Below are positions 31,840-38,945 of a DNA stretch of 64,000 nt, piece after piece (within the stretch, counting starts at the first letter, position 1; each line of letters starts with the position of its first letter). Where the stretch lies: contig JAMWBK010000011.1 of NCBI GenBank assembly GCA_029953675.1, positions 124,001 to 188,000 of the forward strand, given 5' to 3'. Position numbers and translations under genes: made by a program. The DNA comes from Rhodosorus marinus CCMP1338. Its lineage: Eukaryota; Plantae; Rhodophyta. Under the pieces are notes generated by a model, which did not search any database, was not told the DNA's origin, and saw only the letters and a program-made list of their open reading frames with translations.

Positions 31840-32301
31840 ATGAAGAACGGGTTTTTGACGCTGCAGCAGAAGATTGATATTGTCAAGCAGGCATACGCGA
31901 AGGAGGGTCGTGTGAAAGCGACTGCGAAGGCATATGGTGTGACGACGCGGACGATCTACCGGTGGAAAGAGCTGGTTGACGAGAATGGCCGGCCCAAGGT
32001 GCCCAAGGGTATGATCCAGAAACGGACTAGGCGCACGAGCCAGAAGCTTCGACCGGAGTATGAGGAGGCCTTGATGAAAGCATACGAGAACGCGAAGGAA
32101 TCGAAGAAGTCCTTGAATCGAATCCAGTTTCAGAGAGCTCTGCTCGAGTCGTTTCCCGACTTGAACAATCCAGAGTCGCGCAAACACCTGAAAACGATCG
32201 TTGAAAGTTTCTGTAAGCGACACGAAGTCAGGCTCGCCAGGACTCCGCGGGCAAAGCATAACGCACTGGGCGTCCCTAGCCGAGCTTCCCAACTACTCTA
32301 G
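31840..32301 (+). CDS. Small DNA-binding protein with pogo/CENP-B-like tandem HTH domains and no DDE core
   Basis: LTLQQKIDIV..VKATAKAYGVTTRTIYRWK (psq/BrkDBD-like HTH) followed by a CENP-B-like helical region ending FCKRH. The stop follows without any DDE domain. Confidence 0.7.
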   Translation: MKNGFLTLQQKIDIVKQAYAKEGRVKATAKAYGVTTRTIYRWKELVDENGRPKVPKGMIQKRTRRTSQKLRPEYEEALMKAYENAKESKKSLNRIQFQRALLESFPDLNNPESRKHLKTIVESFCKRHEVRLARTPRAKHNALGVPSRASQLL

Positions 32302-33521
32302 CTCCTGGTCCTATGGTCGAAGGCCTCTACGAAGTCTATTTAAGCAACGTATATCTGCGATAGGGCGAACTGAAGGTCCGGAAACCCTTTTTTCGCTCAC
32401 CCGCTTCCCGACGGATTTGCCCGTGGACGAGAGTACACGTCTTGACTCCTACTCAGATCCTATATTAAAGTATCTTGCATACCCTTGCTAATATATTTGG
32501 TCAGTACTGTTGGTTCATCTGAGCAGTTTATTAGAACAGACTCGGGCTTCACACGAGACAGAATGGATTTCCAAAGCTTTCTGTTCCACGAGTTGAGGAC
32601 AGTGTTGATTTAGTCCTTGGTCTTGACGCAAGCCCTGGCAGACGGTCATTCTCTACGCAGGCTTGCTCACAGTTTATCTTTAACTCTGCCGGAGAATCTC
32701 CGTAGATGTATTCGGAGCCCGACGTTAAAACCATTGCGCTCATTTCAACTGCTATCTCAACAAGGCAACCTACTTGAGCCCATCATGGACCCAATTAACG
32801 CAAAATAAGATGAGAGCCGGCTCTTGCGCATGGCCATGAATGCCACTGCGAGATAGTTCACCCAACTCCAATATATCCTACGTTGGAACTGCCGCTAAGC
32901 ATTCAACATCTCACTAACACACAAGTCGAGCTCTCGATCCGAAAATTCACTCTTGGTAAAAGCGCAAAACGCCCTAGATCGTTGCACACTAAAACTAAGT
33001 CCCAGTACAAAACAGCAAGACGGTGAAGATCAACCTCAAAAGCCCTGGGGCTAACTGACTGACTGAGAAAAAGTCCCCAACCCTTTAATACCTTCATAAC
33101 CAATGGCAGAAAATAAGAACCCTTGTCAGTTACTGACACAACGCCCATAGCTTTGCATCCTCATGCTGGGGATTCTCAAGAAAGCAACTTTACTCAATAC
33201 ACCGCGCTCATCTGGGTCGGCAATGGTTGTTAGAGCATGGCGAAGTCATGTCCAATGAATTACAAACAGACTAAACATCACTGGAAATAATATGAAAGTC
33301 TACAGTTCCAAACGTACAGCGTCAGAAACAATAACCAAGTTGCCGACCCGCCAGGGGTTACGTTGTCATACAGCTCTGACAGGGACTACGCAGGGAAGGA
33401 CTTTAGATAGTCAGTACCAATGATCTATCATCTAAGCATGTGACTATACCATCCTCCTCGCACACCTTGACACAATGGTCTGCCCTCCAGTACATCGTCC
33501 CATCTAACAGACTAGCACCAT

Positions 33522-33673
33522 GCCATGGCGAAGCCATGGCCAACGCCTTCACAGAACATCACAATCCAGGCCAAAGGCATGGCCAATGATCACCAACCTG
33601 GTCAATAGAACTGTGATAGAGTCCAAGCTCACCTCGGGCCAAAGCCATGGCTTCGCCATGGCTTCGCCATGGC
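33522..33673. repeat. Inverted arrays of an 11-bp GCCATGGC(GAA) unit
   Basis: GCCATGGC at 33522, 33533, 33644, 33655 and 33666, variant at 33576. Left GCCATGGCGAAGCCATGGC is the exact reverse complement of right GCCATGGCTTCGCCATGGC. Confidence 0.85.
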
Positions 33674-33917
33674 CAATGTTACTGACAAATCTATATCTAG
33701 GTATATATAAAGAACTTCAAATTGAAATGTTTGGGCGGGGGAATGGTGAGGGGGATGGGGAAGGGTGAGGAGATATGGTTTGGAAAGAGGAGGAGGGAAT
33801 GGAAAGATATGTAAATGGGATTATGTAATTTGGGTATTTGGATAGTATTTAAGGATATGTGTTTATAGGTCGATTTTTTTTTTGGTGTGTGTATGTGTGC
33901 GTGTGTGTGTATTTGAG

Positions 33918-36900
33918 ATGATTAAATTGTATGATGTGGAGCTGGTGGAGCCGCTGGGGGTTGGTGGGACTGAGCCGGATCGGCTTGGGTTTCAGAGCGT
34001 GGCGTGGTGTGAGGGGTTGGATTTGATTGCTGTGGTGAGTGGTGATGGGAACGTGTCTGTTTTTCATGCGGACGCGCCCGGGGAGAATGCGGTGCTTACG
34101 ACGCCGAAGAATGCGTCCGCGAGGCATGTACAGTGGCAGCCGGCGGGTTCGCGTCCTCCCGCGCTCCTCGTGGCGGATTCTGCTGGTAGAATCACGTTCT
34201 GGGCGTCGAGGGACTACCGCGTGAATGCGTGGAAAATCGTGGGAAAGCTGGAGCTCCGGCCGTCGGTCATGGCGATTGGATGGACTCGAGACGCATCCAT
34301 GTTGTGCGCTGTGCTCTCCCATGGCGAGCTCTGCGTATGGAGAATATCGCCTAAGGCTTCGGGCGAGCTGGACATCTCCGAGCTCGACGCTACTGGCGGA
34401 AAATTCGGGAAGTACTTCGATGGACCAGTTGCATGCGCGTCGATTGCTCCCGGTGGAGTTTCCGTTGACAAGGTCGCGGTTCTAACTGTTATGGAATCCA
34501 CTCCTTCTACAGTCAATGTATGGCATATTTCCCCAGAAGGAACGACAAAGTAAGTAGTGTCCGGAAGCCGCGCAGTCCATACAAGGGCTTCTATCACGCC
34601 AGCAGCGTGTCAGGGTCACTTCCAAACGACTTGCTATGGACCCCTCCATCCGAATGGAACCTATGATGACCTCGTTTCCCCTTGTAGCCGAGAGCACTCA
34701 GAGACCTGATCCAAAAAAAAGGCACGACCGATGAATTGATTCGCAATCTCGTTTCTTTCTCACAGGTTTCAGCGGAAGGCTTTGGGTTCAGCCGAGCTTG
34801 AGAATGACGTATGTATAGCAGCCGCTGCGGCACCAACTGCGGGAGCACTTTTTGCGGTCGGGGAGAATGGTTCCATTGAGCGATGGATGCTTGGGAAATC
34901 CAACCAAAGTGACGGTCAAGGACGCGCACAGACCAGCGAGAGTCAGTGGATCAAGGCTGGTATTCACCTCCCCTTTGGATCGATTTCAGGGCGTCCGAAG
35001 GTGACCTCCGTCAACATATCGGCAGACGGGGTCAAGGTCGTGACTACGGACACTCAGAACGGAGTGAGCCTGTATGATGGGAGGCGGCTCGGTGATGGTT
35101 GCCGCTTGACTGTTCCACTGGACAGGGCTCCGCATTGGGGCTCGTGCTTCTCGCCCTCTGGATTTTGCGTGGCAGCCCTCAGTGGCGATGGCGTCTTGCA
35201 GGTAATGCGTTACCAAAAAATCTATCTGCTTCGTCCGCCGGGCTTTTCTGTTTACTTTTATGCTTTGCCGCCCTCTTCTGGTTGGTTTCCAAAGATCTGG
35301 GCGATGACGGCACCCGCAACGTCACCGGGTGAGCTCGCGCTACAGCTGATTACAAGGACGAAGAATCACGGTAAAAGAGGCTGCTGGGATATCCTGGCGC
35401 TGCTTCTCAAGCTGGGGAAGGAAACAGTCGCCAATGTGGCTAAAGAACTCGGGCGACACCCTGGCGAAAACGTTGATGTGCTTCGTCTCAAGATCCTCTC
35501 GGCAGTGGATGAGAATGCTTCTGTTCTCTCCGCCGGAAGGAAGCTGTTGGAGGCAGCCACTAACGCGATTCAAAAATCGGCCTGCCAGGCCGTGAAATCC
35601 AAGGTTGCTATGGTCCAAGGAGTACGAGGCTGCGCTTCAAAAGCCAGATAGAGAAATTTTTAGTCGAACGCAATGACTCAGGTGCGGTTGTTTCTCGTCT
35701 TCGACAGGGAAAGAACGCATTCACGCGACCCGAAATGGTCCGCCAGTGCGTCTTGGAAGTCCTCAGCAGCTACACGAACGTACCACCCAGACAGTCTGAG
35801 CTTTCTGCAGCGCCAATGGCGGATTGGATCATCCTTCTGTGCATCGTATGGCTAAGGCAGGCTGCACGAGCTGTAGAACGTAGACAAATGTAAGTGTAGG
35901 CACATTCAACGCGTCCTTAGCCAAACGCTCCCACGATGACGGCGAACCTGAACCCTTAGTCCATACGCTCGACATGGTCAGGCACATACTATCTCCTGAG
36001 TGGAGCACCATTGTCGAGGCCGACGGTTTGGCGAACGATGAAAAGATGACCGTCGTGAAGGATGTCCACTTGACGAAGTCTCTCAGGACCGCGGCCATTG
36101 CCGCCGCGATATTGACCTCTCTGGATGACGAGTACGGAGATCCGGACCTGTCTCCACGCTATCACCGACTCAAGAAGGATAGCCTGTTCGATGTTGTCTC
36201 AGCTGTTTGGGATGTTTCTATTCCTGTTATGGATGGAATTGACTCCGATGTCCCAGGAATTAACAGTGCACTCGCCCGCCATCGAGTAGCCGCCGAAGGT
36301 TTGAACAACGAGAAGCTGCTCATAGACACTGCAGAGAAGGCCCTGGGTATTAGGGGAAGTGCAAACAGTGCTGGATACACACTCTCGTACGCAAGGAAGC
36401 AGAGTAGTGTAGAATCCGACCAGCTGAGCAAGGTTTGTACTCATACCCGTGCTTGTGCTCCCCATGAAAGATGAGGAAAGTATCTAAAAAAATTCTAATC
36501 GCGCTCATCTGGACGCGCAGGAATGGTGCCCGTACGACATCATCACCGGTAGACCGCTTCCGCCCTGGGTGCCGCTTCGTCGCTGTGTAGTTTCCGGTTT
36601 GCTCGCGGCGGAGATGACTGCACCGCAAGGAGATGGCGATGTGGGCGACGGAGCAACACTAGTTCCATGGGTTCAACGATGGGCCCATGAGTCTCCTTTC
36701 GGAGGATTGTGGTTCAGGCTACCATCATTAGACCTGGATCGGTTTGACCTCATGCAGGCTGTCACCTACAACGAGGAACGTCCGTAGGTTAACTGCTGGA
36801 ATTTCTCTTATTGAAAAGTCACCAAGGCTGAGCTTTGGACGAATGGACGTTTTCTCTAGGAATGCACGAACGGATTCGACGAGGCCAGCCCAGAGACCAG

Positions 36901-37471
36901 ATCAATCTTACTCTTCTTCCAATGCTGGTTCGGAACGGACAACGGCGAAGAAAAGTCGAGGTAGAGGGAGGAAGGGAGATACTGCATCAAAAGCGGCAAT
37001 CCCGAGAGAGCCTATTGTAAGCGCACACGTCCTTCCCCGTAACAAACCACCACGCAAAAGGACTCAAACTGTTTCTGCATCCGTCCCGACTGCGCAGAAA
37101 CCGCCACCCCAGGAGTCGGATCTCGGCAGCGAGGTTCGAAGCGAAGTCAGTGGGGGCAGCAGAAGCCAGAGAGGCCGCGGGAAGCCGAGAAAGAGAAAGA
37201 CACCGGCTAAAGCGGAGGCCAGTACGCCCGCCAACGCAAGCGAAGATACAAGTGTGCGTGTTGACGCTCCGAAGCAATATGGAAATCTCTACGGATTACC
37301 TGGAGACACTACGGTACGATGGAACTCAACATTAGCGTTGCGGGTCAAGGACCATGCAGTTCGCTGAGGAATGCTCACTAAACGCTTTCCCTTGATTCCT
37401 TGTTTTGATGGGATATCCAGATGCAACAACAACAGCAACAACAGCAGCAGCAACAACAGCAGCAACAGCAG

Positions 37472-37524
<53 letters not shown>

Positions 37525-38477
37525 ACAGCAACAACAACAGCAGCAACAACAGCAGCAACAGCAGCAACGGGAGCAACATCAGCAACAGCAACAGCGGACT
37601 CAAGTAGACCGCGCGGCATACACGGCTCAGCAGCGAGCCGCGATGCTGCAGCAGACGCAGCTCCAGCGGCAAGCTGTAGCAAATGCGGCGCAGATGGCCG
37701 CTGGTGTTTCTGCGGAGGATTTGGCTAAATTGAACCAGATGGGAAATACCATGCGGCCACCAGTTGCGGCGTATCAGCCAAGGCAGCTACCGCAGCGGCA
37801 GCAGGCGCAGATGCTACAGGGCCAGATTCCATTGCAGCAACAGCCTCAGCAGCCACAACATGCTCAGCAGCCACAACAGCCTCAGCAACAACCAACACAG
37901 CCCCACCAACAACCACAGCAACAACCTACTCCTGAACTGAGCCGCAACAACAGTCAGCGAATCTGGAGTGGACTGCTGACCGTTCGAAGCTCGGAGAAAG
38001 TGCTGAACGTTCAATGCATCGCGAAACGGCAAAGCATCGACTCGGCTGCGCCGGTGCGAGACTCAGTTGGATGGCCACGCGTGTTGACTTGTGGTGCAGA
38101 AAGACTCAACCAGTTCGAAGATTTGAAACCCCGTGCGACTAGCGAGTTGTCCCAATGGTGAGTTGAAACCAAATTGCGCTATCTCACGCGTGAAAAGTTA
38201 TCGAACTCTGACGCGAGCGATGTCCTATCCGCTCCTGGCCCACCACAGGTACGTCGTCTTCGTACCGATTGACGAGCAGACCCAGCAGGAGATAACCCAC
38301 CCTCTGCTCACGGACTTGGTCAAGCTGATGTTTGAGAGGAAGCTCGCGTTCGAGATCAACTGCGACGACCACCCCACGAAGAAAGGATCTTTGATCTTGT
38401 TCGGCAGCAATCTGGAGGGCGGACACAAGCTCATTGGTGTTTACGTCCAGAGGCCAAGCGGGGGGGGACCCCAATAG
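33918..38477 (+). CDS. MED16: Mediator subunit MED16 with C-terminal extension (basic linker, polyQ, MED25-like ACID domain), multi-exon
   Basis: N-terminal WD40 (VAWC..IAV, LLVADSAGRITFW), CWDILA, ADWIILL and MED16 C-terminal YDIITG..RRC..WVQRWAHESPFGGLWFR. In-frame introns 36784-36859, 37314-37420 and 38158-38248 join it to polyQ and IWSGLL..GWPRVL..ERKLAFEI..KLIGVY. Confidence 0.82.
37424..37567 (+). repeat. CAA/CAG trinucleotide tract encoding 48 consecutive Gln
   Basis: 144 nt of mixed CAA/CAG codons after ATG 37421. Confidence 0.97.
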
Positions 38478-38593: not shown

Positions 38594-38945
38594 TTACCAC
38601 GTGTATTTGGGTGTTGAATGAACCGCTCGGAAGCCTGTTACTGACGCCGGCACCGAATGAATTTATGGGAAATCCACTCCGCAATTCCCCGGTGCTTACC
38701 CGTGCGAACAAGGATCGGGCTTGTGTCTAGGGCGTTCAGTTTTACCTGCTCGCTTGATATCTATTGAGTTACCACGTGTATTTGGGTGTTGAATGAACCG
38801 CTCGGAAGCCTGCTACTGACGCCGGCACCGAATGAATTTATGGGAAATCCACTCCGCAATTCCCCGGTGCTTACCCGTGCGAACAAGGATCGGGCTTGTG
38901 TCTAGGGCGTTCAGTTTTGCCTGCTCGCTTGATATCTATTGAGTT
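38594..38945 (+). repeat. Tandem duplication, 175-bp unit x2
   Basis: TTACCACGTG..CTATTGAG at 38594 and 38769; two substitutions seen. Confidence 0.95.

Follow-up and report, generated by a model that had tools for sequence, protein, structure and literature searches.

A probable fusion of the Mediator subunit MED16 to an ACID-like barrel in the red alga Rhodosorus marinus

The window analysed here is a 64,000-nucleotide stretch of contig JAMWBK010000011.1 (assembly GCA_029953675.1) from the red alga Rhodosorus marinus CCMP1338, and our subject is its segment from 33918 to 38477, in which the coding sequence of the Mediator scaffold subunit MED16 is followed by a glutamine-rich region and a small domain resembling the activator-binding ACID domain of MED25. 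Window coordinates equal L001 coordinates plus 27693. GenBank places two genes in this segment. NDN08_007049 (P0002, 905 aa) covers 33918-37367 and ends at a TGA (37365-37367) inside the interval 37314-37420; NDN08_007050 (P0001, 230 aa) covers 37694-38477, its start being an internal ATG at 37694. The CCMP1338 gene predictions were made with BRAKER2 trained on RNA sequencing (RNA-seq) data (PMC10250338). By six-frame translation and explicit joining of exons we obtain a single open frame of 1236 aa, which ends at the TAG at 38475-38477 (Table 1); its last 151 aa have an exact match in one database protein, the hypothetical protein NDN08_007050. The segment is probably one gene, encoding a Mediator Tail subunit of about 1236 aa in which a MED16 core, a disordered linker and an ACID-like barrel follow one another and for which we propose an activator-docking role. 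NDN08_007049 and NDN08_007050 probably need merging in GenBank. An initial annotation of this DNA, made from the letters alone, had proposed such a fusion, and the exons, intron phases, 48-glutamine run and C-terminal domain that it listed are all present in the sequence at the coordinates it gave, as are the MED16 C-terminal motif WVQRWAHESPFGGLWFR (36668-36718) and an in-frame TAG at 36785-36787. Enumeration of splice sites places intron 4 at 35890-35981, in agreement with transcripts; an alternative acceptor at 35959 was rejected because the frame is not kept.

Table 1. Positions of the fused gene model and its parts in the window
Feature	Position	Strand	Remarks
Whole gene model	33918-38477	+	nine exons joined, all junctions GT..AG
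Exons of the 1236-aa model, part 1	33918-34549, 34766-35201, 35295-35621, 35708-35889, 35982-36432	+	
Exons of the 1236-aa model, part 2	36521-36783, 36860-37313, 37421-38157, 38249-38477	+	
MED16 core	33918-36783	+	763 aa, six exons; matches GenBank P0002 and MMETSP open reading frame P0003
Intron after the core	36784-36859	+	76 nt, phase 2, GT..AG; removes in-frame TAG 36785-36787
Exon 7, linker part 1	36860-37313	+	S/T/P/K/R-rich; present in all transcript-derived open reading frames
Putative intron	37314-37420	+	107 nt, phase 0, GTACGA..pyrimidine tract..CAG; flanks join in phase
Exon 8 first part, linker part 2	37421-37951	+	48-Q run, A/Q-rich stretch, Q/P-rich stretch
Barrel, N-terminal half	37952-38157	+	SQRIWSGLL..VQCIA..VGWPRVLTCG..SQW; family profile positions 2-73, E 5e-18
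Intron inside the barrel domain	38158-38248	+	91 nt, phase 2, GTGAGT..CAG; spliced in GenBank P0001
Barrel, C-terminal half	38249-38477	+	YVVFVP..ERKLAFEINC..GSLILFG..KLIGVYVQRP; family profile positions about 74-142, E 1e-20

The N-terminal 763 aa is MED16. A WD40 propeller (aa ~1-360) opens this core; an all-helical half follows (aa ~365-675), and the C-terminal signature is EWCPYD..RRC..WVQRWAHESPFGGLWFRLPSLD. An AlphaFold2 model of the core (predicted local distance difference test (pLDDT) 75.6, predicted template modelling score (pTM) 0.78) accordingly has strands in residues 1-360 and helices in residues 367-675. In a Foldseek search the top three matches are all human MED16 structures (7emf_P, 7lbm_0 and 8tqw_P; E 4e-19 to 1.6e-13, template modelling (TM) scores 0.60-0.65), the best of which superposes over its full length (E 4e-19, TM 0.65/0.65, about 870-880 columns); the remaining matches are restricted to the propeller, with a query TM of about 0.3. 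A nine-sequence profile finds mouse MED16 (6w1s_K, E 0.0028) and human MED16 (E 0.031), and the mouse match is made up of two collinear pieces, profile positions 72-131 with residues 75-132 in the propeller and 792-819 with 797-824 at the C-terminal motif. The signature W-x-Q/K-R/K-W ... G-G-x-W-x-R-V-P is also present at the end of the core. The identity thus follows from the full-length Foldseek match together with profile matches at both ends, and the initial annotation had named this part correctly. No match to the Pfam Med16 models was found at E up to 10 (N-terminal, middle and C-terminal parts, P0003), and Pfam returned weak generic WD40 families only; given the structural result, we read the missing Med16 match as divergence.

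One feature of the MED16 C-terminus appears to have changed in this lineage. A C2-C2 zinc finger is described there by Bourbon 2008 (PMC2475620), and the corresponding site falls at window positions 36521-36720 (columns 1050-1130 of alignment A2). The first Cys pair (EWC...RRC) is kept; at the second, where mouse has C-L-C-G-G, the nine aligned sequences all have S-P-F/L-G-G/A. As far as the alignment can tell, the zinc site has probably been lost in red-algal-type sequences, with the surrounding motif kept.

The same order of domains recurs in other organisms. An exhaustive HMMER scan with the 151-aa C-terminal domain returned 60 proteins at E <= 1e-3, 34 of them at E <= 1e-10; word-indexed protein searches with the barrel and with a 55-sequence profile retrieved only the window's own protein. 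Eight relatives have the fused order (P0010, P0015, P0026, P0036, P0042, P0045, P0017 and P0060), seven of them 1364-1745 aa long and the eighth a 756-aa fragment truncated at its N-terminus. Over its whole length, the Rhodosorus MED16 core aligns with their first ~800-900 aa at 29-41% identity, and the core alignment contains 51 invariant columns, including EWC..D..TG..PLRRC..SGL...W...SP.G..W.R.PSLD. After the core comes a low-complexity linker with K/R patches and then the barrel, which is single-copy and at the extreme C-terminus in all eight. P0060 is the 1373-aa Porphyridium purpureum protein KAA8499176.1 (FVE85_6761). P0015 is an uninterrupted open reading frame (ORF) of 5019 nt on an 81-kb genomic contig (ENA ERZ6863533), and P0010 an uninterrupted ORF of 4095 nt on a genomic Logan contig (SRR23287148); in both, therefore, the fusion is independent of splice prediction. 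A look for the same fusion in other red algae, which the initial annotation had suggested, has thus turned it up in Porphyridium purpureum and in these two genomic ORFs. The MED16-linker-barrel fusion is a conserved architecture in the relatives, and we hold it highly probable that it is the ancestral state of the group formed by Rhodosorus and its relatives.

The barrel family itself is broader. It comprises about 60 clusters at 50% identity, represents at least four red-algal classes, judged by the four members that carry a taxon name, and includes, besides those of Rhodosorus and Porphyridium, proteins of Gracilaria changii and Compsopogon caeruleus (A0A7S1THF4, a stand-alone barrel). Many clusters are stand-alone tandem pairs: short relatives of 270-390 aa consist of two tandem barrels and nothing else, and carry no Pfam annotation. 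The tandem-barrel proteins include P0007, P0009, P0013, P0014, P0016, P0018, P0032, P0035, P0040, P0056 and P0063. By alignment distance, the nearest neighbours of the Rhodosorus barrel include the fused-type copies of P0010, P0015 and P0017. A neighbour-joining tree of the barrels is star-like and not decisive; in it Rhodosorus falls into a large clade with seven of the eight fused-type copies. One bacterial S-layer protein among the matches (P0065; E 6e-4, five short stretches) was set aside as a low-complexity artefact. Most relatives end 10-30 aa past the barrel in a short acidic-hydrophobic motif, for example GDDAATLLDDLLGG, DEVALMNSLIGS or DDVARLLNDVLRTS, which is found among the C-termini of P0010, P0015, P0026, P0045, P0017, P0042, P0043, P0050 and P0055. 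In appearance the motif resembles an amphipathic helix, or an activation-domain-like peptide built into the protein. It is missing from the Rhodosorus protein, whose last residues are QRPSGGGPQ.

To characterize the barrel we relied on its predicted structure as well as on sequence profiles. An AlphaFold2 model of the 148-aa domain (pLDDT 92, pTM 0.86) contains seven long strands, one short strand and two helices. Its top Foldseek match in the Protein Data Bank (PDB) is the human MED25 ACID domain (9ccv_B; E 3.8e-5, TM 0.59/0.63), with a root-mean-square deviation (rmsd) of 4.3 Å over 139 columns at 16% identity, and this is the sole match with E < 0.001. Next come Ku70/80 and bacterial Ku barrels and, in third place, the SPOC domain of SHARP (1ow1; E 1.4e-3, TM 0.52/0.47, rmsd 6.6 Å over 175 columns); the Ku/SPOC class as a whole lies at E ~1e-3 and TM ~0.5. 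In alignment A1, which holds 55 full barrel copies, the invariant or near-invariant columns are W9, G11, A28, W45, P46, W73 and L121. Pfam Med25 is the most frequent weak match across this family (4/55, best E 0.0016), SPOC being found in 2/55. When P0032 is scanned as a whole protein, its Med25 score reaches 22.1 bits (cut-off 25; E 1.5e-4, profile positions 6-97 of 154). Alignment with hhalign pairs the W-x-G-x-L motif, the Cys strand and the W-P-x-x-L motif with human ACID, for the family and for the P0032 subclade alike; the template was one human ACID sequence, checked residue for residue against 2l6u, 2ky6, 2l23, 9ccv and 2xnf. In our reading the barrel belongs, as a divergent member, to the SPOC/Ku/ACID superfamily, and among the known branches the ACID domain of MED25 is the nearest to it.

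Several results from sequence comparison pull away from that reading. The sole Pfam match of the Rhodosorus domain is SPOC (PF07744), with 15.5 bits where 25 are required (E 0.017), a match that covers profile positions 4-88 of 153 and stays below the Pfam threshold. Pfam Med25 (PF11232), which has a gathering threshold of 25 bits, gave no match at all on the Rhodosorus domain. Hidden Markov models (HMMs) of the family and of the P0032 subclade retrieved no MED25, SPOC or Ku from the PDB sequences, and hhalign against human ACID is weak (E 0.15 over 43 columns for the family, E 0.027 over 47 columns for the P0032 subclade). The domain also has a net charge of +2 (pI 8.5), with a family median of 0, compared with +8 (pI 9.6) for human ACID. 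The family consensus sequence matched nothing in Pfam. The lamin and bL33c matches of the P0032-subclade HMM in the PDB were discarded as noise, and an IRF4 match, the only one obtained when the domain was run against the PDB with phmmer, as spurious. Of the MED25-type ACID identity proposed initially, the structural part stands, the closest solved structure being human MED25 ACID; in sequence the profiles remain below threshold, and SPOC and Ku are close seconds. No VWA family domain was detected in the window protein or in 25 other whole family members (26 scanned in total) and, with the Med25 threshold also unreached, the protein is not a MED25 orthologue.

The mild charge of the domain keeps a SPOC-like phosphopeptide reader alive as an alternative. 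The gene would then still be fused, but its barrel would read phosphorylated serine motifs such as those of the RNA polymerase II (Pol II) carboxy-terminal domain or of co-repressor tails, a role with which the SPOC-only Pfam result, the SHARP SPOC and Ku barrels as close structural seconds and the contrast with the strongly basic human ACID would agree. Yet MED25 ACID is the better structural match, with fuller coverage and the lower rmsd over its columns, and Pfam Med25 exceeds SPOC across the family in both number and score. Moreover, the W-P motif aligns with the W-P of human ACID, and the near-invariant residues belong to the hydrophobic core, the consensus showing no evident basic cluster that is conserved. 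We consider a SPOC-type reader unlikely.

A third possibility is that the downstream frame is a decayed remnant or a chance frame extended by the repeat. In favour of it, a CAG/CAA repeat has no stop in any of the three frames. However, the glutamine frame, open from 37409, is the sole frame open through to the barrel domain; both exon halves match the 55-member family HMM (E 1e-18 to 1e-20), the barrel is modelled with high confidence (pLDDT 92), and mixed CAA/CAG coding would be expected of a repeat maintained at the protein level. A chance or decayed frame is thereby refuted.

The ACID-like barrel on MED16 requires three splicing events downstream of the core, and the transcript evidence on them comes from a second R. 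marinus strain that is 95% identical. A MED16 query retrieved four ORFs from this strain: P0003 (939 aa), P0006 (912 aa), P0004, in which intron 1 is retained, and P0005, which is encoded on the 2965-nt JGI transcript contig L002. All MED16 introns are confirmed by these ORFs, and L002 has six introns removed, five of them internal to the MED16 core. At the first downstream junction, 36783/36860, splicing is seen in GenBank P0002, in MMETSP P0003 and P0006 and in L002 (..TYNEERP|NARTDS..), so that the TAG at 36785-36787 is bypassed, as had been predicted. The last junction, 38157/38249, is used in GenBank P0001; it restores the most conserved motif of the family, Q-W|Y-V (Q-W-Y-V), and the family HMM match continues across it, again in line with the initial annotation. 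As a separate observation, MED16 intron 2 (35202-35294) has a length divisible by three (93 nt) and contains no stop in frame; its retention would add 31 aa with the frame intact, and it is removed in the transcripts examined.

The middle junction, 37313/37421, behaves differently, and its predicted splicing in Rhodosorus was not confirmed: the 107-nt segment is kept in all transcripts, which are from the second strain only (L002, P0003, P0005 and P0006), and on retention the MED16 frame stops at TGA 37365-37367. L002 reads from the MED16 exons through 37314-37420 into the CAG/CAA repeat, where the contig ends. The MED16 exons and the polyglutamine tract are thus on one RNA, with no mRNA end between the two annotated genes. 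The segment itself is ~80% identical between the strains and has three single-base indels (107 vs 106 nt), with the GT and the AG kept in both. The MED16 exons show a nucleotide identity of 90-94% and the K/R exon one of 87.7%; over the exons in general it is about 88-94%, and exon gaps between the strains are in-frame only. The peptide that follows the 37313 donor is frame-shifted between the strains, reading VRWNSTLALRVKDHAVR before the stop in one and VRWTQHLPCGPGTIHFTEACSLKAFP before the stop in the other. Given its frame-breaking indels and its ~80% identity, 37314-37420 evolves as non-coding sequence. We infer that the 107-nt intron is removed in Rhodosorus, although the transcripts at hand retain the segment, and consider it likely that a spliced, fused mRNA exists there.

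A different reading of this junction is that Rhodosorus has two products or two genes, a MED16 that has a K/R-rich tail and ends at TGA 37365-37367, and a barrel protein produced on its own, by way of an internal promoter or starting at ATG 37421 or 37694. A fission of the ancestral fusion particular to this lineage could account for such forms, or else regulated retention of the intron, with MED16 lacking the barrel as the predominant isoform. A number of observations count in favour of separate genes and, to that extent, against the fused model. The transcript-derived ORFs P0003, P0005 and P0006 all terminate within the retained 107-nt segment, and the BRAKER2/RNA-seq annotation likewise stops in 37314-37420 and calls a separate downstream gene. 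The spliced 37313/37421 20-mer GGAGACRCTACGAWGCAACA had no true match in the JGI contigs. In both strains an ATG lies where the Q run begins or close to it, adjoining the acceptor and just after the in-frame TGA, an arrangement that suits an independent ORF. Stand-alone proteins of one or two barrels are, in addition, common in the relatives, the Compsopogon caeruleus protein A0A7S1THF4 being one, and a free-standing copy would not be implausible. A protein-guided scan of the JGI contigs for the barrel found nothing, and the one match to GGAGACRCTACGAWGCAACA, in L005, was dismissed as chance, lying in an unrelated AT-rich coding region.

On the other side, the sole transcript contig at this point runs from MED16 exons into polyglutamine without a 3' end, and only 53 nt separate the stop at 37365-37367 from ATG 37421. 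The boundary between the two supposed genes falls exactly on a conserved GT..AG segment in compatible phase. The orthologues, moreover, are single ORFs in which the K/R patch lies in the middle of the linker rather than at a C-terminus, and a spliced isoform could have escaped notice because the assembly breaks in the repeat. Two separate genes in Rhodosorus therefore seem improbable to us. Under the fused model, the two-gene annotation in GenBank would stem from the penultimate intron, 37314-37420, being retained in the assemblies where it abuts the hard-to-map CAG/CAA repeat. Short-read assemblies commonly retain 3'-proximal introns. The retention may be technical, in that assemblies break in the repeat and reads into CAG/CAA map poorly, or it may be biological, a detained or regulated intron giving rise to a barrel-less isoform.

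The linker that joins core and barrel is ~330 aa long in Rhodosorus and up to ~700 aa in the relatives, so that linker and barrel together extend the protein by ~470 aa beyond the MED16 core. Exon 7 contributes the basic patches KKSRGRGRKG and RGRGKPRKRK, with KPRKRK at 37182-37199; patches of the latter type resemble nuclear localization signals and may act as such. Exon 8 contributes a run of exactly 48 glutamines (37424-37567), encoded by 25 CAG and 23 CAA codons. K/R patches are found at the same place of the linker in the single-ORF orthologues, and Q-rich linkers recur in P0042 and P0043. BLAST comparison of the Rhodosorus linker with those of the relatives gave low-complexity matches only, and a possible linker motif, A-x-x-x-RRAAL/MLQ, was not trusted. 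Within exon 7 there is also an alternative, in-frame intron of 81 nt (37017-37097; 27 aa, VSAHV..PTAQ), which P0003 includes and which has been spliced out of P0006 and GenBank P0002; its retention or removal yields two linker isoforms.

The sequence on either side of the gene has some features of its own. Just upstream of the MED16 start, 33520-33680 is rich in the palindromic motif GCCATGGC, and an 11-bp tandem repeat, GCCATGGCTTC, occurs 2.7 times at 33644-33673; a G/T-rich tract (33740-33915) then leads up to the ATG. The second-strain transcript L002 starts in this region, its bases 1-45 matching 33817-33860. Farther upstream, a gene at 31840-32301 (L001 4147-4608) encodes 153 aa whose Pfam matches are weak and confined to HTH_Tnp_1, HTH_23/28/29 and CENP-B_N; judged by these alone, it could be a piece of a transposase, domesticated or decayed. 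Beyond the fused gene, about 115 nt past the stop and thus in the 3' untranslated region or in intergenic sequence, a 175-bp unit stands twice in tandem at 38594-38945 with 98% identity between copies. No further copy of this unit was found in the window.

How the protein might work can be sketched from its domain order. In the Mediator Tail, the MED16 part would take the place that it has in other eukaryotes, and its incorporation into the complex is predicted. Swinging on its linker, the barrel would be a permanently tethered docking site for the activation domains of transcription factors. The layout would be that of MED25, an anchor followed by an intrinsically disordered region (IDR) and an ACID domain, with MED16 replacing the VWA domain as anchor; the linker would supply reach and, through its KPRKRK-type patches, nuclear import. 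Binding of activators by the barrel, and the bypassing of VWA docking that the initial annotation had put forward, would both be consequences of this analogy. Tentatively, one may go further and picture red algae as having no VWA-type MED25, their ACID-like barrel being hard-wired on MED16, with an expanded set of free single and tandem (PTOV1-like) copies that could compete for the same activators, and with the 107-nt intron serving as a switch. If this picture, which we offer as a possibility with considerable reserve, were true, retention or removal of 37314-37420 would switch Mediator in Rhodosorus between a barrel-less and a barrel-bearing Tail, and the fusion would be a 'Rosetta stone' for the MED16-MED25 contact of mammalian cryo-electron microscopy.

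Gene-specific activators dock on the Mediator Tail, which varies more than any other part of the complex. An ACID-like barrel on MED16, the neighbour of the VWA domain of mammalian MED25, would be independent evolutionary evidence for a functional neighbourhood between the two, and it would come from a conserved gene of a deep-branching photosynthetic lineage. It would also mean that there is another way of arriving at the anchor-IDR-barrel design, and would provide a system whose activator-binding module is unable to leave Mediator. The barrel family defined here is, in addition, missed by current Pfam models. MED25 has often been regarded as a late, peripheral addition to the complex (PMC7921410).

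Full-text literature searches found no published description of a MED16-ACID or MED16-SPOC fusion, which agrees with the statement in the initial annotation that none was known, and the available text of Bourbon's 2008 survey (PMC2475620), which lists red-algal MED subunits, makes no mention of such an architecture. Known domains thus appear in a new, conserved combination together with an unannotated domain family, and the architecture is apparently undescribed. The Rhodosorus core compares most directly with MED16/Sin4/TRAP95, with which it shares the WD40 propeller, the helical C-terminal half and a full-length superposition on human MED16; it differs in the ~470-aa extension and in the replaced second Cys pair of the zinc finger. 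The barrel shares a superfamily with SPOC (SHARP/SPEN, PHF3, DIDO) and Ku70/80, as its weak Pfam SPOC match also indicates, but these have lower TM scores and higher rmsd, their sequence match is below threshold, and SPOC proteins are not Mediator subunits. PTOV1 is a vertebrate protein of two tandem ACID/PTOV domains. Its architecture resembles that of the short two-barrel relatives, which are separate genes in other organisms, and the likeness is one of architecture.

The closest parallel in design is MED25 of animals, plants and some fungi, with its VWA-linker-ACID order. In mouse Mediator the VWA domain lies between MED23, MED24 and MED16, and ACID hangs on a disordered linker of ~180 aa, a linker not visible in the map (PMC7921410). 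The notion that MED25 docks on MED16 through its VWA domain, from which the initial annotation had argued, is thus roughly right; in mouse, the VWA has MED23 and MED24 as neighbours as well as MED16 (PMC7921410). MED25 and the Rhodosorus protein follow the same logic of a folded anchor in the lower Mediator Tail, a long IDR (~180 aa in mouse compared with ~330 aa in Rhodosorus) and a small C-terminal beta-barrel, and the W-x-G-x-L and W-P-x-x-L motifs are common to human ACID and the Rhodosorus barrel. They differ in the anchor, which is the VWA domain in one and MED16 itself in the other, and in the barrel, which in Rhodosorus ends right after the last strand, has two helices only in the model and is much less basic. 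MED15, with its order of KIX domain, Q-rich IDR and Tail anchor, is likewise an activator-binding fold tethered by a long, often polyQ-rich IDR (PMC7921410). There, however, the binding domain is N-terminal and built of KIX helices in a different subunit, whereas in the Rhodosorus protein it is a C-terminal beta-barrel.

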